NCBI GenBank assembly: GCA_946965045.2 | Contig: OX337233.1 | Coordinates: 1,364,001-1,428,000, forward strand | Origin: Epithemia pelagica | Taxonomy: Eukaryota; Protista; Bacillariophyta | Length of the DNA stretch: 64,000 nt | Reading direction: 5' to 3' | Shown: positions 1-19,180 of the stretch, piece by piece | How the letters are laid out: each line of letters begins with the position of its first letter | How positions within the stretch are numbered: position 1 is the stretch's first letter | Notes under the pieces: model-generated | Seen by the model: only the letters and a program-made list of their open reading frames with translations | What the model was told of the DNA's origin: nothing | The model's database searches: none | Translations under genes and position numbers: made by a program

Positions 1-2557
1 CCGTGATTCGTCCATATCCATACGTATGTTCAATGGATGCCACAGTCCATTCCGTTTCATACAGGGCTACATCGTCCAATAGTCCTCCTGCCGTTCCGAC
101 GGTAATATGCGTCGGTCCCCCATACTCGTGGGTCGTGTCGTGACAGTGACTTCGAAACAGGCCATCGCAGGTTCGCAAATAGGCATGGTAATGACCCGAG
201 ACGACCAAATCGACTTGGTAATCAAACAAGAGATTTTCAATTTCATAGCGCATTCCTATACCCACGGCATTTTGGTCCCAAAATTCTTCCGATTGATACA
301 AGGGACGATGCATTTCGACAATGACCCAGGGTGTTTGCGATCGATTCACGCCGCGAGACAAATCGGCCAAGGCCCAGGTATATTGAGGAGATCCAAACGA
401 CAAGTCATGTTCGGACGACAAGACAATGGTATGGACATTTCCAAAATCATGTGAATACCAAAAGACGCCATTGCTGGGAGGAAGAAGGGAGGCATCCTCG
501 TTTCGCTGGGGCATGGTAAATCGTTTGGTGGTGGGGACTCCACATTCTCCACCACTGTCATTTTCAAAGTTGCCCCAGGCGGGATGAAATCCATTGTACT
601 CGGAATCTGGAACGTTGTTGGAGGAATGTCCATTCTCATGATTGTTGTTGGTCCGGTGATGGTGGTACCGAGAACTGCTCGGGGGAGGAACCATCACGGA
701 CGGATCCTTGGTTCCTCCCGTCAGGTAATCGTATTCATGATTGCCCACGGCAATGTGCAAGGGGACACGTGCGGCATAGGGTTCAATCATGTGGAACCAG
801 GCATCCCAATGATGACCGGCACCCTTGGCATAACTCAAATCTCCCACATGATGAACGGCTCGAATCGGAAGGCTATTATTGTTGGTGGTGGTGCCCGTGA
901 TTTCTCGTTCCACCATGGCGGCTGTCCACGCCGATCCTTGACCCCATCCATTTTCGGGACATCCTTGATCGCCAAAGACCAAGTACGAAAAGGGTGGTAC
1001 ATAATAGTCGGGCTCCTCCATCGTCGTCGTCGTCGTCGTCGTAATACTACGATTGTTGTTATTGTCGGTGTCATCCACAGTCGGTCGGGGCACCAAGGGA
1101 GATTGAAAGGAGTAGACCGTCTTGGACCACGTGACACCTTGTCCATGTTGCAATCCCACTTGATAATAATACCGCGTATTGGCTTGCAATTGCGTCAAGA
1201 GGACGGTATGCAATTGTCCCGGATCGGTAAATTTGCCCGGTTCCGTCAAATTGGCCGGTTCCATACACAACTCGGCTGCCGTATAGGTTTGACTCGACGA
1301 GGGGGCGGCCGTAACTTTACTGTCGTGCGGTGGATTGGAGGTGCCATACACCACCACGGCCACCATGGCATTGGTCAATCCAGCATGACCGGAACCGGTC
1401 GAAAAAGACACTACCATTTCGGATGGATTGGATGTTCCACTCAAGTGAATCCCAAAGGGAGATGTGACGGAAGTAATATGAATCGGTGCCGTGGCGGCCA
1501 GGTAATGCAGTTCCACCGAGCCCTTGTCGTGGTTGTCGGCGTCGTCGTTGGCGTGCTTCGGAAATGTACTCTTTTTGTTCTTCAACTTTCTCGTCTTTTG
1601 CTGATACAAGAGAAATTGACAGTGTGAAAAGCGGTACACGGAAAAGTGAGGAATGTGCCATGTTCCTGAATTCCAAACCGAGGAATTCGTCGAGTGTGGC
1701 GACGACGAAAAGAGGGAACCCAACCGTCGTTGTCGTGCATTCCCCGATGAGATTGATGGTGGTTGTTCTTGTTCTTGTTCTTGTTGTGTAGTTTGTTCGT
1801 ACTCGTGTGTGGCACGAATTTGTGCCAAGGTTCCCACTTCCAACAGTTGCCGTGTACTCTGCAACACGGACCGTGGGTGGACAAACTCTTCGTCGTCCTC
1901 CTCCTCCTTCAGTTGCCAACAATACAAGGCCAAGACATCCGTAGGTTGCAATACCACCTGGGTGGTAGACTGGGTGGTCGAAGAAGGGACCTTCCAGTGT
2001 ACCGTCAAGGCGTCACCACCCGCAAGGACTGGAGACGACACTGAGAGCCAAGGTTCAGTTTCGTCGTCGTCCTGTCCTACTCCGAGGGTCCCTTCTTCTT
2101 CTTCTTCGGATCCCACAATCGGATACACATATGTGGCGTCTCGCAATTGCTCGTACAAGGGATTTTCCAAGGCATACAAGAGGGGATGCGGTGGTTCCGC
2201 GTCTCGCAACGACAAGAGCGTGGGCATGACCGAAGTGGAGGGTCGAACATACGAGGAGGAGGAGGACGAGGAGGAATCCGGGTGCCGCTCCAAGGAGTCG
2301 CCTCCTCCGCCTCGTTCCACCAGGGACCAATAGGCTGCCACCACGACCGATCCCACGCCCATCCAAACCACGAGCCACAGCGGACGTCCAAGGTGGCACC
2401 ACCATCCTTGTGGTGTACGCGGTGTGGACGAGGATAATGAGGAGGAGGACGGCGGTGGTGTCAAGGGATCTTCTTCACGGGAAATGGAGGCATAATCGGC
2501 AAAGGGTTTTCGCCGTGACTGTTGGTTTGTCTGCTTGTCCCACAAGAGTCGTCTCAT
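1..2557 (-). CDS. Purple acid phosphatase / calcineurin-like metallophosphoesterase, N-terminally membrane-anchored; 3' end lies beyond the window start
   Basis: Not in the ORF track because there is no stop in the window. I translated it manually from ATG 2557 (MRRLLWDKQ...). It has a hydrophobic segment PLWLVVWMGVGSVVVAAYWSL, an Fn3-like region (GIHLSGTSNPSEMVVSF...LHTVLLTQLQANTRYYYQVG) and the PAP metal-ligand motifs FGDQG, GDLSY, GNHE, VEMHRPLY and SGHYHAYLRTC. Confidence 0.92.
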   Translation of the reverse strand, partial: MRRLLWDKQTNQQSRRKPFADYASISREEDPLTPPPSSSSLSSSTPRTPQGWWCHLGRPLWLVVWMGVGSVVVAAYWSLVERGGGGDSLERHPDSSSSSSSSYVRPSTSVMPTLLSLRDAEPPHPLLYALENPLYEQLRDATYVYPIVGSEEEEEGTLGVGQDDDETEPWLSVSSPVLAGGDALTVHWKVPSSTTQSTTQVVLQPTDVLALYCWQLKEEEDDEEFVHPRSVLQSTRQLLEVGTLAQIRATHEYEQTTQQEQEQEQPPSISSGNARQRRLGSLFSSSPHSTNSSVWNSGTWHIPHFSVYRFSHCQFLLYQQKTRKLKNKKSTFPKHANDDADNHDKGSVELHYLAATAPIHITSVTSPFGIHLSGTSNPSEMVVSFSTGSGHAGLTNAMVAVVVYGTSNPPHDSKVTAAPSSSQTYTAAELCMEPANLTEPGKFTDPGQLHTVLLTQLQANTRYYYQVGLQHGQGVTWSKTVYSFQSPLVPRPTVDDTDNNNNRSITTTTTTTMEEPDYYVPPFSYLVFGDQGCPENGWGQGSAWTAAMVEREITGTTTNNNSLPIRAVHHVGDLSYAKGAGHHWDAWFHMIEPYAARVPLHIAVGNHEYDYLTGGTKDPSVMVPPPSSSRYHHHRTNNNHENGHSSNNVPDSEYNGFHPAWGNFENDSGGECGVPTTKRFTMPQRNEDASLLPPSNGVFWYSHDFGNVHTIVLSSEHDLSFGSPQYTWALADLSRGVNRSQTPWVIVEMHRPLYQSEEFWDQNAVGIGMRYEIENLLFDYQVDLVVSGHYHAYLRTCDGLFRSHCHDTTHEYGGPTHITVGTAGGLLDDVALYETEWTVASIEHTYGYGRIT

Positions 2558-11896: not shown

Positions 11897-14218
11897 TCAT
11901 CTCTGTTCTTGTGGTTGCAGAGTTGGTTCCTCTTGTTGTTGTGCGGGGGCTTGGTGTGACTGGGACTGGCTGTGGGCGGAAGCATCTTTGGGAGTCGTTG
12001 TTGTTGTCATGGTCAAATCGATCAAGATGTGGGCTTTGGCAATGTCCTTCCAACTTTCCAAGGTGGATTGCAATTGATTGGCAGAGATTTTGGCTTGATC
12101 CATGCGATCGACCGAATCGTCCACACGCACCACGACATGTGCCACCTGGTTCTCGTGGAACAACGCAATGGATTCTACACTGGAAATGTCGGGTATGGAC
12201 ATGGCCTGTTGTCGAATCAATTGTTTCAATGCATCGTTGTCATGACTATCATCGTCCACAAGATTCTGCAGATGGTCGTGATCATGGTCGTGATGGTCCA
12301 CTGGAGACGATGGGAATTCCACCGAGGCAACAACCTCCTGTTCATCGGTGGTGGCTGCTGCATGAGACACGGAGAAAGCTTGGACTTTGTTTCCGCTTGT
12401 CTCACCCCACGGATCCGGACCACTGCCGCTTCCTTGTGGCGGCGGTAAGGCCCGTACTTCGGCATCCAAAATGACATGGGCCACCGAGTCGTGGGTCAAA
12501 ATGTGGTGTCGTACCTCTTCTTCCAAACGACGCGTATCGGCCGCCGAACAGTGTTGTGCTTGTTCCATGGTGGTGACCAATTTGACATCCACCAAGGCTT
12601 GGGATCCCACTTGGCGGGCCCGTACTTGATGGACCTGAACACGGTTGTTGTGGTTGTTGGTAGTAGTACTGTCGTCGCCGTGGGAGTGTGTAGCGAGAGA
12701 TGACTTGGTATCATTGGTTTGTTGTTCTTGTTGTTGTTGCGCGGTCGTATGTTCTTGTACAATTTGCGTCACTTGTTGCACCAAGGCTTCATTGTTGGTA
12801 TCGGACAATTGGTTAATGCTTTCTCCCAAAATGTCCGCCCCCGTCATACAAATCATGCCGGCCACCAACAAGCCGGCAAAGGAATCGGCCGCCAACATGC
12901 CCGGAACAAACATGGCCAATCCAATACTGAGCAAGGCCAAAATGGACGAATAGGCGTCCGATCGATGATGCCAGGCATTGGCCAACAAGACTTGCGAATT
13001 GAGGCCTTGGGCCACGACACGGGTGATCCGAAACAACCATTCCTTGGACAAAATGGACACACCGGCCATGAGAAGGGCGGGAGGTTTGGGAAGGGCCACG
13101 GCGGTCGTTGCGGTTGCTGCTGCCGCCGCAGCCGTACCAGTACTCCCCCGACTGCTCAAAATTTGCAACATGGTTTGATTGGACATGGCACCGACGGACA
13201 AGCCCGTGGCCAACAAGGTGAGGGCCAAAAACAGACTCCCCAGAGCTTCAAATTTGCCATGACCATAGGGATGATCGTCATCGGGTGGTAAGCGCGCGAC
13301 TTGAACGGCAAAGAGGGTGACAAAGTCGGATACCAAATCACTGAGGGAATGACCGGCATCGGCAATCAAGGCCGCCGAATGACAGGACACACCCACGACC
13401 CATTTGCCAATGGACAAGACCAAATTTACCACCACACCCAATAAGGTCACACGAATGGCGGGGTCGCCACGACGACGACTACGACGTTGGATGCGACGAT
13501 TCTCCCGTGGAGAAGGAGCCATGAATGTCATCGATTCCTCATTCTCTTCCTCTTCTTCGGCCGGACCACTACCGAGTCCAAGGAGGTTGGACCATTGGAG
13601 GGGCGGCAAATGTTTGACCACTTGTTGCATGGTGGCTTGTAGTTTGTGTACCAACTGTGTCAACTCGGATCGAATGGGATGGGCAAAACTCAAGGCCAAG
13701 GCACTCACACAAAAGGCAGTCCAATCCGTCGTGCGAAAGTGAAACAATTGAGACAAGGACATGGTGGTCGTCCAAGGGGACGAGGCAGCGGCCCACCAGG
13801 CGGCTCGTGTTGTTGCTGCACCACCCGCACAGGCCAAGCCATTTCTCCAATTGCAAACCAACCGAGGTCCCAAGGTAACCATGGCACAAAACAACAAGAG
13901 TGTGACTTGTCGACGCCAAAAATGCCGTTGCAATACTCGATGTTGGGACGACGATGAAGAAGAAGAATGATCGTGATGATGATGATGACTGTGCGAATGA
14001 CCCATGTGCATGGATAATGATCGAGGCGTTCTGGTTGTAACTCTCCTTGCTGGTGCATGCCAAGAACCCGACGACGACGACATGGACACGAGCGTTTGAT
14101 GATTGCGCGGGACGCAAAAGCCTTGTACGGATGATGTTCCCAACAGCAATAGACCAACAAATCCCACCATTATGAAGCAGATTTGCGGCTTGACCCTATG
14201 CAATAAGGATATCATCAT
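11897..14218 (-). CDS. Cation diffusion facilitator (CDF) metal transporter, FieF/MMT-like
   Basis: ALIADAGHSLSDLVSD (TM2 HxxxD), DDDHPYGHGKFE and LLANAWHHRSDAYSS (TM5 HxxxD), plus the His-rich HMGHSHSHHHHHDH. Probable start is ATG 14170 (MVGFVGLLLLGTSSVQG-FCVP, signal-peptide-like). Confidence 0.92.
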   Translation of the reverse strand: MMISLLHRVKPQICFIMVGFVGLLLLGTSSVQGFCVPRNHQTLVSMSSSSGSWHAPARRVTTRTPRSLSMHMGHSHSHHHHHDHSSSSSSSQHRVLQRHFWRRQVTLLLFCAMVTLGPRLVCNWRNGLACAGGAATTRAAWWAAASSPWTTTMSLSQLFHFRTTDWTAFCVSALALSFAHPIRSELTQLVHKLQATMQQVVKHLPPLQWSNLLGLGSGPAEEEEENEESMTFMAPSPRENRRIQRRSRRRGDPAIRVTLLGVVVNLVLSIGKWVVGVSCHSAALIADAGHSLSDLVSDFVTLFAVQVARLPPDDDHPYGHGKFEALGSLFLALTLLATGLSVGAMSNQTMLQILSSRGSTGTAAAAAATATTAVALPKPPALLMAGVSILSKEWLFRITRVVAQGLNSQVLLANAWHHRSDAYSSILALLSIGLAMFVPGMLAADSFAGLLVAGMICMTGADILGESINQLSDTNNEALVQQVTQIVQEHTTAQQQQEQQTNDTKSSLATHSHGDDSTTTNNHNNRVQVHQVRARQVGSQALVDVKLVTTMEQAQHCSAADTRRLEEEVRHHILTHDSVAHVILDAEVRALPPPQGSGSGPDPWGETSGNKVQAFSVSHAAATTDEQEVVASVEFPSSPVDHHDHDHDHLQNLVDDDSHDNDALKQLIRQQAMSIPDISSVESIALFHENQVAHVVVRVDDSVDRMDQAKISANQLQSTLESWKDIAKAHILIDLTMTTTTTPKDASAHSQSQSHQAPAQQQEEPTLQPQEQR

Positions 14219-14884: not shown

Positions 14885-17800
14885 ATGGATACCTCCAGTA
14901 TCAACGCGTTGCTCACAGCGTCGGGTGTTCCCGTGACGGGGAGTTTGGGTAGTACGACAGTCACACGAGACGATTGTATTTCCACCATGGAACAGTGGTT
15001 GGGAATCACCACCACCACCACCACCACGACTGCATCATCATTACCCAATCAGGACCTTCCACAACAACAGCTTCATGCCGACTCCGTGGCTAACGGTTTG
15101 CCCTCGACGGACCACCCCAATGCAGTGACCAATGAAGCTGTTTGGTTGGCCTGGCGACGCATCTTAATTTCTGCCTGGCATCCCGAATCGCCAACCATTG
15201 CTGCTACACCCACGACGAATGGTTCTGCTACTTCCACACCATCTTCCTCCAATCCTCCTTCCTTCTTGACGGCTGCCTCGGCATCTCATCATCATCATCA
15301 TCATGTGAATTTACTCGTGGAGTCCACCGTGTCACCCGAGCAAATTTCCTTGACCCGTGTCTGGGATGCCGTTCGTGCGACGCACTGGCTGGAAGCATGG
15401 ATGGAATTGCCCCTGGATGCCATCCCCCTTTCACCCGATACCACCAACGACGACGACGACAACAAGAACGCTTTCTCCATGGATCATCATTGGGTGGGAG
15501 TCTTACTGTGGCACGACCAACAACAACAACAACATCAGCAGTCCTCAACACTAGCAGCAGCCAGTCCTCGTCGCTTGATTCAAGCCTTGTACCATCATTT
15601 GGAACAATTGCCACTCTTACAAGCCCACATGCACGCGTATACTCATTCCTTGCAACAACCAGCAGGACAGGACCCTGTGCCCCATCGATTGCAATCGTCG
15701 GGAGATGGACCCCGTGCTTCGTCCCACGACCGAACCACCAACCACAACAACCGGAAAAAACCGGACATGGCGGCTCGATTGGCCGCCTTGCAACTGTCGC
15801 AATCCGTATCGGCCCGATTGCTGACGGAATGGAAGGCTCACGAACAACGGTTGCAACGCATCTTGGCCGTGTGGTATCGTGCCTCGTCGGCACCCTTGCG
15901 AGCGTATACGCGCACGTGTTTGGGCCGTGTGTGGAAACGGTATTGGTTGCGGACCGCAGCCGGTGGGGGTGGTGGTGGTACTTTGGTGACGCGGCATGAA
16001 AATACCCAAGCCGCTAGTTTGTCCATTACCCTGCAAACCTTGCTCGTCATTGTCCAAGGACGACAACGACAAAACGGAACGACGGCCGTGGCGCGAGACT
16101 TGATTCTGGAATTGTTGCTTCCTCTTCATCAACCCAATGCCTTGGTCTTGTGGAGAGATCAAACACCCGTCTTATCCTTGTATCATGAACCCTTGACGCA
16201 ATGCATGGCGACCCTGTTGGCCTTGCCCACAACCAAACAGGCGGAACATGACGACCACAAGAACGAGGAGGATTTGATGCCTCTCGTCTTGCAGGCCTTG
16301 ATTCAACCCGACATTTTTCCAATGGCGGGTCATACCAATAAGCAAATCCTGCTCTTGCATGAAATGGATACCTTTTTAGGTTTGTTTGCCTCGTATTGTG
16401 ACGATTCGAAACAAGGCCCGGAAAAACAAGCACCCACCCACGTCCCATGGTGGCTCCAAGGACCGCAACAACAACAACATCAACCGCCACTGGACTCGAC
16501 CTGGTGGGTCGATGTCTGTCGCGTGGTGGCACGATGCATGGCATCGGATCATTCCGGCTTGGCGGAACAAGCCTTGCAATTGATTCGCAACACTGTCTTT
16601 GTCACCTTGGTACAACGACATGCCGAGTCCTGTTTGCCCCTCTTTTTGCAAGCCTTGGTTCCCTCCTCCTTTGTCCATTCCCCACCAACGACAACGACTG
16701 CCACATCCACAACAACCACCAGCAGCGCCACCACCAGCAACTCGTCTCTGGTTTCGTGGAATCCCACGGTGCGCAAAATGATTTATTTGGTCTTGAGCAA
16801 ACTTGTCACTGTGATTTCTCCCTCCATTGTACAAGCTGCCGCTCAACAAGCCTTTTTTGCGGCTCGGCCCGCAGTCGCCAAGAACGAGGATGCATTGTCC
16901 GAGATTCGTAGCAGCACCACCAAACCAGTTTCCTCCTCCTCTTCCAAGACCAAAGCAACCACAACCACGACCAAGCCCACAACCGGTCATCGGTCCTTGT
17001 TGCCTCCTTCCGTTCATTCTTTGGGACAACGCAAACCTCGGTCACTTGCGGCACCACCCCCGAGCTCCAGCTCGTCGGGGGGAATTTTGGGAACCTCCTG
17101 GAAACCCTCCAAGACAACGAGAAAAGGTACCAGTGGTGTCGTCCGCCATGGAGGAATGCCTCCACCCATTGGTGGTCGTCCTCGTCGTGGTGGTGGTGGA
17201 GGAGCATCATCGTCATTATCACATTCCCAACAGCAACCACCCGCGACCATTACCGGTGTCGCTCCGTGGGCCACCAGTAGCAGCCCAGGCACTGGACGTG
17301 AAATGCCGCCACCACCTTCAACCTCCCAAGCAAAGTCCAAGCAACCACCCGTGACCATTACCGGTGTTGCTCCCGGGGCCATGAGTGGTCCACCCCTACC
17401 GCCGTCTGCGAGACGGGCACCGAATCTACCCAAAACGACACACTCCATCCAATCCGGGGCTGACAAGACAAGTAGTCTTGGGGGAATTGCGGAAGGCTCT
17501 ACTATTCAGGAAGATAATGATGATCATCATCATGAAACTCCAATAGATGGAAAACCGTTGGAAGAGAAGAAACGAGAGGATACTATATCTGAAAACGATG
17601 TACCTGTGAACTCTTCATCTCTGGAAACCCAGTTTCAATCTACGGCCTATCAACGTGTGTTGGATTATATGGAAATACTGAAACCACCACCCGAGGAAGA
17701 AGGGGCGTCGTCATGGAGCAAGGTTCAAATGGCCGAGAGTCCAACCTTGTTACCCACTCTCAAGTTTCACAATTTGGTCTTTGGACATGATTTAGGAACT

Positions 17801-19180
17801 GGATCGTTTGGGACTGTTCGCTATGCACGTTTGATTGAACGAAACAAGACGCGGTCCAAGTGGCCGGAGTATGCCGTCAAGATTGTGTCCATGGACAAGA
17901 TACAGTCCTTGGGCTACGAATCATCGATTCAACGAGAAATTGCCATTTTGCATCTTTTGTCACACCCCGGTATTGCTAGACTGATCTCGTCCTTTCGTTT
18001 CCGGGAAGGCACGGTCTATCTAGTGTTGGAGTATGCCAGTCGAGGTGATTTGTATACCCTCCTTCGACAACAGGGTTCATTGGATCATGATGCCACGCGC
18101 TTTGTCATTGGCGAGTTGGTGGCAGCCTTGGCCAGTATTCATGATTTGGGTCTGGTGTATGGCGATTTGAAACCAGAAAACATTGTCATTACTGAAGTGG
18201 GACACATCAAACTGACGGATTTTGGCGCTTGTCGACCCGTCACGGAACAAGCAAAGAAACGAATCCATAACCTGGCCAAGACATGTTTGAAAAACCTTCG
18301 AAATGGAGACTGGAAAGAAGACGAGAAAGCAGCGACAAAAGAAAGTGAGAGTGGAAAAGAAAGTGAATCCAACAACCTTGGAGAGGAACTTGACGACCTC
18401 GAAATGGATGATGACGTCCAAGATGAAAAGGAAGATGTGCGGGTTGAAGGGACGACAACCTATCTGCCACCTGAGGTTGTTCTCGGTGCCTATCCAACTC
18501 AGGCTGCCGATTCGTGGGCGCTGGGATGCGTGCTTTACCAGTGTTTGTCGGGACGACCACCACTTCTGGACGTTGATGAAGAAGCTACTCGACAACGAAT
18601 TGTTACGTTTGCTGCCGAAGCTAGCAGTTCTTCTTCGACGAACAATGACAGTCATGTATCGAAACTGTTCGAAGACCGACATTCGTCGGGTGTGTCGCCG
18701 CTCGCACGTGAACTGATTCGAACCACATTTGCACGCGATGCCAACAGCCGTCCCAATATGTACCAAATAGCACGTCACGAGTTTTTCGCAAGTGCCGGCG
18801 TACAAGTTTTTACATTGTACCAACAGGCTGCATCGCCATTGGAAGTGGGGAATGTGGCACCTCCCACGGCGGCGGAAGCGGAGGACGCACAATGGGCTCG
18901 ACGACAATACAGTTCCATATGGGCACCGCAACCTCAACAATACACTTTGGGCTCTAGGACGGAAGAACAAGGAAATGATCAGCAAACCAGATCAACCTTG
19001 GCAGCTATGGCGGCATCGCCAATACCAGAAGGAAAGGAAGTGACAGCGTTTTTCACAGCACGACAAGAACCGGAGACTGGAGGAGCTTTGGCTCCCTCTT
19101 CCGTTGCATCGCTAAGTTCACAAACACCAGTGTTGGGAAGGATTTCAGAACGAAGACCTTTTCTGCCTTCTCCCGGATAG
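14885..19180 (+). CDS. Fusion protein: PP2A B56(B')-like HEAT domain plus C-terminal PDK1/AGC-like Ser/Thr kinase
   Basis: Uninterrupted 1431-aa ORF. Kinase motifs: [48 protein letters not shown]. B56-like motifs at about 15827-16803: [48 protein letters not shown]. Confidence 0.88.
   Translation: [1431 protein letters not shown]

Follow-up and report, generated by a model that had tools for sequence, protein, structure and literature searches.

A Strongly Diverged B56-Type Domain Joined to a PDK1-Like Kinase in a Conserved Diatom Protein Family

Gene Model and Distribution in Diatoms

The window analyzed here is a stretch of 64,000 nucleotides from the diatom Epithemia pelagica (contig OX337233.1, positions 1,364,001 to 1,428,000 of the forward strand). 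It holds an intact gene for a protein in which a strongly diverged domain of the B56 type, named after the regulatory subunits of protein phosphatase 2A (PP2A), is joined to a PDK1-like kinase (table 1, with positions counted from the first letter of the window). To our knowledge, every other B56 subunit on record is a stand-alone PP2A targeting subunit, and a covalently joined kinase has not been described. A preliminary description, made from the letters of this DNA alone, knew of no functional account of the architecture, and none was found in the literature searched. It had also allowed that the architecture might be a standard family already characterized. Half of this holds: the fusion belongs to a conserved diatom family in which automatic annotation already labels both domains (e.g., a JGI product name), but no study characterizing the family was found. 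What is unprecedented is the combination of two well-known kinds of domains.

The open reading frame (ORF) begins with ATG and runs on over 4296 nucleotides with no internal stop, so that the single intronless ORF of the preliminary description was borne out. An identical 1431-aa product was called in the ENA assembly ERZ21939226 (contig ctg1357l). From end to end, N-termini included, the protein is colinear with 43 homologs, which supports the start codon as well as the intronless model. The runs found for E. pelagica were DNA-like Logan contigs (four runs belonging to a single study, the longest records being 440–510 kb), and over the gene they carried only allelic single-nucleotide polymorphisms and in-frame indels. 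The allelic variation clusters in low-complexity tracts (window 15440–15540, 16465, and 16720); an 18-nt in-frame deletion at 16720 lies in a Thr-rich loop, and contigs break near a His/Gln-rich tract. A second product, P0001 (1424 aa, with a B56 part 96% identical), may represent the alternative allele, or else the same contig may have yielded a second gene call.

Relatives were collected by word searches, which returned 43 proteins with aa 291–702 as query and 245 proteins at E <= 1e-60 with the kinase and tail; the best 120 of these 245 all carried PF01603 and PF00069. When five pieces of the query were compared by BLAST, the order of conserved N-terminal part, B56-like part, linker, kinase, and tail was found in 43 of the 43 relatives, and the six matches for which no kinase was listed simply stop at its first residues. 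Identity to the query was 52–76% in the kinase versus 27–51% in the B56-like part, and the proteins were about 1000–1600 aa long. The named sources included pennate diatoms (Epithemia, Nitzschia, Cylindrotheca, Amphora, Fistulifera, Mayamaea, Seminavis, and Stauroneis) and centric diatoms (Thalassiosira, Cyclotella, and Skeletonema). In the ESM Atlas, one cluster with the domain pair was found, labeled Bacillariophyta and comprising 159 members (Pkinase in 100%, B56 in 97%). Taken by these sequence comparisons, the B56–kinase fusion is a conserved family in centric and pennate diatoms. The preliminary description had named transcripts separating the two halves as evidence that would count against it. 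Several members, however, are MMETSP transcripts marked "type:complete" in which both domains are present, and both therefore lie on one mRNA in these relatives.

We consider it scarcely credible that the gene is an artifact of the gene model or the assembly, with two genes read as one, or that its resemblance to B56 is due to chance. Such a view could draw on the DNA-like nature of the E. pelagica runs and on one metagenomic relative, P0148, which was called as three genes. However, the frame is continuous, more than 120 relatives share the same order of parts, complete MMETSP transcripts included, and the "split" relative is itself colinear, with only an intron-like gap in the kinase region (L003:1588–6992). 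Chance resemblance is ruled out by the E value of 8e-32 and the Z score of 19 reported below. A metagenomic protein of 527 aa, P0149 (L002:5001–6584), matched only aa 162–447 of the B56-like part at 26% identity, and no kinase was found within 5 kb downstream of it; it may be a relative that stands alone or has been truncated.

Sequence and Predicted Fold of the B56-Type Domain

The preliminary description had proposed a profile search and a structure prediction for each half of the protein, and both supported its assignments. The Pfam B56 profile (PF01603), which has a gathering cutoff of 25 bits, scored 34.2 bits against the whole protein and 39.5 bits against aa 291–702, the match being limited to profile positions 300–383, its last quarter. 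In a search of the PDB with the single sequence, all 14 of the best matches were B56, though weak (E = 0.013–0.3). A family profile built from 44 members and aligned over aa 122–705 matched human B56 chains (delta, alpha, gamma, and epsilon) with E values between 8e-32 and 1e-29, over a span from about residue 182 of B56gamma (in the delta and alpha alignments; from 197 in the gamma alignment) to about residue 430. The five blocks that had been likened to B56 by eye were all recovered in HMMER alignments to human B56 alpha, gamma, and delta, the first of them with a gap of one residue.

The AlphaFold2 model of aa 122–705 had a predicted local distance difference test score (pLDDT) of 73.9 and a predicted template modeling score (pTM) of 0.76, and the top 22 Foldseek matches to it were all PP2A B56. 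Superposition with VIA-align gave Z scores of 17–19 against B56, with 250–308 aligned residues at 20–23% identity, while the nearest non-B56 HEAT proteins reached at most 13.2. Model residues 19..548 (aa 140–669) were paired with B56gamma 42..415, and the first three repeats were recognizable by structure only, not by sequence. As modeled, then, the B56 half folds into the complete pseudo-HEAT core of eight repeats. The B56 match that had been placed at aa ~310–640 was right as to the fold but not as to its extent, which starts near aa 140.

Canonical B56 cores are mutually 71–88% identical (PMC2257934), or about 80% (PMC4705670). At 20–23% identity the diatom domain is, by sequence, an extreme outlier of the B56 family. 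It shares with PP2A B56/B' (PPP2R5) the predicted fold over nearly the whole core and the blocks PLH, L-x-x-Y-H, P-K-x-x-x-x-L-x-E, A-E-R-A-L, and W-N-x-T, but it shares a chain with a kinase instead of standing alone and has low-complexity inserts and two invariant loop motifs, E-N-T and V-L-W-R-D-Q-T, which are without counterpart in canonical B56. By our own placement of the repeats, these two insertions are intra-repeat loops of repeats 4 and 5. In B56, the intra-repeat loops contact the PP2A C subunit (PMC2257934). Because new invariant motifs sit in such loops, the face of the domain turned to the C subunit may have been remodeled for a modified or different partner.

Of the two options in the preliminary description, one was that the B56 fold serves as a substrate adaptor for the kinase. 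The features above bear on the other, that the protein is a true kinase-bearing PP2A B' subunit, whose B56-like domain would assemble with the A and C subunits and so bring opposing activities into one particle. We regard this as doubtful, with a real chance nonetheless of being correct. The fold is predicted at full length and passes the Pfam cutoff, and the blocks recognized by Pfam (T-P-K, S-x-H-x-x-x-A-E-R-A-L, and W-N-x-T) keep both their length and their key residues, some of them in intra-repeat loops as we placed the repeats. Nor are we aware of a protein with the B56 fold that works outside PP2A, which also counts in its favor. Against assembly into a holoenzyme stand the low identity to B56, the N-terminal three repeats that sequence does not recognize, the new invariant motifs in the loops of repeats 4 and 5, and the variable low-complexity inserts in other loops.

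The PDK1-Like Kinase Domain

The C-terminal half scored 166–171 bits with the Pfam Pkinase profile. The preliminary description had called it PDK1/AGC-like, and PDK1 was its best PDB match by sequence (E = 2.5e-33) as well as by structure (Z = 32.7, root mean square deviation 1.8 Å, 274 aligned residues, 33–35% identity). Candida Pkh followed at Z = 31.9, and PKG, Akt, and Aurora at 31–32 with 27–30% identity. "PDK1-like AGC kinase" is therefore a fair label, which does not denote orthology, with PKG, Akt, and Aurora lying within 1–2 Z units of PDK1. In 103 family sequences, the G-x-G-x-F-G loop, Lys999 (of VAIK), Glu1018 (of alphaC), Asp1094, Lys1096, Asn1099, DFG, and P-P-E were all invariant. 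The HRD triplet is replaced by Y or F, then G, A, or S, and then D, with arginine at the RD position in none of the 103; YGDLKPEN had thus been read correctly as lacking this arginine. The same is true of R-V-E-G-T in place of a phosphorylatable activation-loop site, since the acceptor position is Arg in 101 of the 103 members. The acidic insert reported after DFG is present, but it is about 50–55 aa long rather than about 70: the spacing from DFG to EGT is 73 residues here (53–110 in the family, median 66) versus about 17 in the PDK1 alignment. At the start of this otherwise variable insert, a conserved N-L-R-[DN]-G-D-W-K is found (window 18293–18316).

Judged by its residues, the kinase looks catalytically intact, non-RD, and active. 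The independence of non-RD kinases from activation-loop phosphorylation is established, and since the diatom kinase has neither the RD arginine nor a phospho-acceptor in its activation loop, it probably does not depend on such phosphorylation either. It resembles PDK1/Pkh more closely than other kinases but differs in having Y-G-D for HRD, Arg at the Ser241-type site, about 50 extra residues in the activation segment, and a long conserved C-tail of its own. It also lacks a PH domain, as had been noted: a Pfam scan found neither this nor any other domain C-terminal of the kinase, and the tail is predicted to be disordered. In an AlphaFold2 model of the kinase part alone, the core had a pLDDT of 85–98, and the tail was confidently modeled only to about aa 1329.

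Short Motifs in the Linker and Tail

In the linker of about 250 aa, a repeat of the form P-P-x-T-[VI]-T-G-V-A-P-W-A was found in 160 copies in 100 of 122 members, one to three in each and two in E. pelagica. We take it to resemble the PDK1-phosphorylated activation-loop site of AGC kinases, T-F-C-G-T-x-x-Y, and from its sequence it might serve as a site of autophosphorylation or as a pseudosubstrate. The linker and tail were further searched for the pattern [LMF]xx[IVL]xE, with expected counts taken from shuffles that ignore the kinship of the members, a limit that applies to each comparison that follows. About 21 residues past the last repeat, [LM]xx[IVL]xE occurred in 46 of 124 members versus 5.4 expected. 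Near the C-terminus, the pattern [LMF]xx[IVL]xE occurred in 44 of 76 members versus 3.0 expected, and the strict LxxIxE form in 35 of these 76 versus 0.5.

The two E. pelagica motifs, L-G-G-I-A-E and L-G-R-I-S-E, resemble the sites of known LxxIxE clients (BubR1, RepoMan, and Kif4A) in fitting the consensus and in lying in disordered regions. Of 130 members, 121 have a further tail motif, x-P-I-x-E-G-x-E ... F-F, that is similar to the second half of BubR1 L-S-P-I-I-E (PMC4930772). The diatom protein differs from such clients in that the candidate client itself contains a B56-type domain, and its P-I-x-E motif has no hydrophobic residue at position 1. That residue is reportedly needed for B56 binding, as in the BubR1 L669A mutant. 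The motif was rejected as a canonical LxxIxE docking motif, position 1 being S, T, N, A, K, or D in the 121 members.

In the kinase-only model, the Ser-Ser, P-I-x-E/F-F, and C-terminal LxxIxE motifs of the tail all had a pLDDT below 52. This model does not support, though it may still be so, that the invariant tail motifs represent the usual hydrophobic motif that AGC kinases dock on their N-lobe; that they were left unplaced would agree with docking somewhere other than on the kinase domain, as far as such a model can suggest. The invariant Ser-Ser site lies 65–80 residues upstream of the C-terminal LxxIxE motif.

The Putative LxxIxE Groove

In human B56gamma, the LxxIxE motif is held by a Leu pocket (H187, S173, I227, T184, and E226) and an Ile pocket (H187, I231, Y190, and S230); H243 and K240 hold the motif Glu, R197 contacts the peptide backbone, and R188 and R201 read phosphates (PMC4930772). 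The H187A and R197A mutations abolish BubR1 binding (PMC4930772), and R222E of B56alpha is the standard pocket mutant (PMC8256288); by alignment offsets, R222 of B56alpha is R197 of B56gamma. We mapped the groove onto the family by HMMER alignment of 44 sequences, in which the one-residue gap falls in a turn predicted by the AlphaFold2 model. The residues kept were Y331 (Y190), R339 (R197), and R343 (R201), each in 44 of 44 members, together with I389 (I231) in 42 and G392 (G234) in 43. The H243 equivalent is H or Y in 32 of the 44, and Ala in the E. pelagica protein. The groove thus appears from the alignment to be half conserved, that is, retained but re-specified, its Leu/His side having been rebuilt.

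The LxxIxE motifs might act only in trans, recruiting ordinary PP2A-B56 to dephosphorylate the kinase or its neighbors, while the B56-like domain is a relic scaffold or binds an unrelated partner. This is, in our judgment, unlikely. Motifs of canonical consensus do stand at conserved positions in disordered regions, the protein's own groove has lost residues that are key to the pocket, and the basophilic Ser-Ser site lies not far upstream of the C-terminal motif. However, Y331, R339, and R343 do not vary between centric and pennate diatoms, nor do many other surface motifs, and a working binding surface therefore seems a better description than a relic.

A Candidate Groove–Motif Switch

We hypothesized that a switch formed by the B56 groove and short motifs targets or autoregulates the kinase and links it to dephosphorylation of the PP2A type, a proposal to which we give about an even chance. 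Since the kinase is probably independent of activation-loop phosphorylation, its control and targeting would be supplied by the B56-derived domain, which would work as a module with a peptide groove. The groove would bind the protein's own LxxIxE-type motifs in the linker and at the C-terminus, leading to autoinhibition or self-association. Through these motifs, or through those of partners, the kinase would also be tied to a PP2A-B56-type dephosphorylation step acting on the T-x-T-G-V-A-P-W repeats and on the nearby invariant R-R-Q-F-S-S site. This switch is preferred because the groove keeps the equivalents of R197, R201, Y190, and I231, which human B56 cannot do without in binding LxxIxE, and because the same chain carries conserved LxxIxE-type motifs.

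A precedent comes from B56delta, which has a short, substrate-mimicking motif in its own disordered arms (PMC10769853). B56delta and the diatom protein are alike in having, in one polypeptide, a B56 fold and disordered segments with a short motif of the substrate-mimicking type. They differ in that the arms of B56delta regulate a PP2A holoenzyme, whereas those of the diatom protein include a whole kinase and their binding is only predicted.

Several observations weigh against the switch. The H187 equivalent has become Gly, Ala, or Ser in the family (A328 in the E. pelagica protein), R188 has become E or D, E226 has become R, Q, or K, S230 has become R, and K240 is replaced. Because the equivalents of H187, E226, S230, and K240 have been lost, the groove may be unable to bind LxxIxE at all. 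The groove of the E. pelagica clade is moreover less basic, with V388, A403, and D405 versus R, H/Y, and H in most of the family. We looked for co-variation between the groove and the tail motifs and saw none: the E. pelagica clade changed its groove, and the motifs stayed unchanged. The strict pattern finds LxxIxE-type motifs in only 37–58% of members, and the shuffles with which these counts were compared ignore kinship. Low pLDDT in the tail, seen in a model of the kinase part alone, is weak evidence. Finally, all of the runs found for E. pelagica were DNA-like, and none was RNA.

The switch, assembly into a PP2A holoenzyme, and recruitment of PP2A-B56 in trans are not mutually exclusive. 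A further and quite improbable scheme, built from the same sequence features, is a self-contained toggle in which the B56-derived domain recruits PP2A A and C, the kinase phosphorylates the R-R-Q-F-S-S site and the activation-loop-like T-x-T-G-V-A-P-W repeats of its own chain, and the LxxIxE-type motifs gate the access of the phosphatase. If it were true, a single polypeptide would set, sense, and remove its own phosphorylation, a diatom-specific signaling device.

Diatoms are major primary producers on a global scale, and their signaling is poorly mapped. Conservation across the centric and pennate lineages suggests an important role for the family, which is also a natural experiment on the re-specification of a B56 peptide groove. 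It points to regulatory motifs that can be tested, namely the LxxIxE-type sites, the P-P-x-T-x-T-G-V-A-P-W-A repeats, and the R-R-Q-F-S-S-I-W tail. With orthologs in the tractable or sequenced Cylindrotheca, Nitzschia, Fistulifera, and Thalassiosira, these hypotheses are directly testable.

Features of the Gene and Its Neighbor

The features of the gene are collected in table 1. In the ERZ21939226 assembly, the gene call is flanked by a minus-strand cation-efflux gene and a small ORF. The upstream neighbor in the window (11897–14218, minus strand) is a 773-aa ORF, called as 772 aa in ENA, with a Cation_efflux domain (CDF transporter). It is transcribed divergently and has no apparent functional link to the B56–kinase gene.

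Table 1. Features of the B56–kinase gene, with positions in the window
Feature	Position	Strand	Basis
Whole gene, intronless ORF, 1431 aa	14885..19180, stop codon included	+	ORF list; homolog colinearity; identical ENA gene call
Complete (as modeled), very diverged B56-type pseudo-HEAT domain, aa 140–669, with several low-complexity loop insertions	15302..16891	+	PF01603; profile; AlphaFold2 and VIA-align
Groove segment, equivalent to B56gamma 182–201; Y331, R339, and R343 (Y190, R197, and R201) invariant; A328 at H187	15851..15913	+	Alignment
Family-specific E-N-T motif, nearly invariant, preceded by a Gly-rich insertion and located where B56 has its repeat-4 intra-repeat loop	15995..16018	+	Family alignment
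B56 PLH block, followed by the family-specific invariant insertion V-L-W-R-D-Q-T	16112..16165	+	Family alignment
Best conserved B56 blocks (T-x-K-x-x-L-L-H-E; S-D-H-S-x-x-A-E-x and 10 further letters), the part recognized by Pfam	16334..16786	+	Pfam/HMMER alignments
Disordered Ser/Thr/Pro/Gly-rich linker, aa 703–952, with conserved short motifs	16991..17740	+	Homolog comparison
Linker repeat 1, 12 residues	17237..17272	+	Repeat count in family
Linker repeat 2, with Gly in place of Trp	17345..17380	+	Repeat count in family
Linker LxxIxE-consensus motif L-G-G-I-A-E, aa 865–870, followed by an acidic stretch	17477..17494	+	Family count
Highly conserved extension directly N-terminal of the kinase (G-A-S-S-W-S-K ... 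L-L-P-x-L-K-F)	17702..17767	+	Family alignment
PDK1-like AGC Ser/Thr kinase domain, aa 967–1296, catalytic residues intact	17783..18772	+	Pfam; PDB searches; family alignment
Catalytic loop V-Y-G-D-L-K-P-E-N, non-RD	18155..18181	+	Family alignment
Expanded activation segment: N-L-R-x-G-D-W-K, acidic stretch of variable length, ending in R-V-E-G-T with Arg at the usual phospho-acceptor; pLDDT 50–76	18227..18439	+	Alignment and AlphaFold2
Invariant tail motif, W-x-R-R-Q-[FY] and 11 further letters, basophilic Ser-Ser site, not docked on the kinase by AlphaFold2	18893..18943	+	Alignment and AlphaFold2
Conserved x-P-I-x-E-G-x-E ... F-F motif of the tail, reminiscent of an L-S-P-I-x-E second half, without a position-1 hydrophobe	19016..19054	+	Alignment
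C-terminal LxxIxE-consensus motif L-G-R-I-S-E, aa 1417–1422	19133..19150	+	Family count

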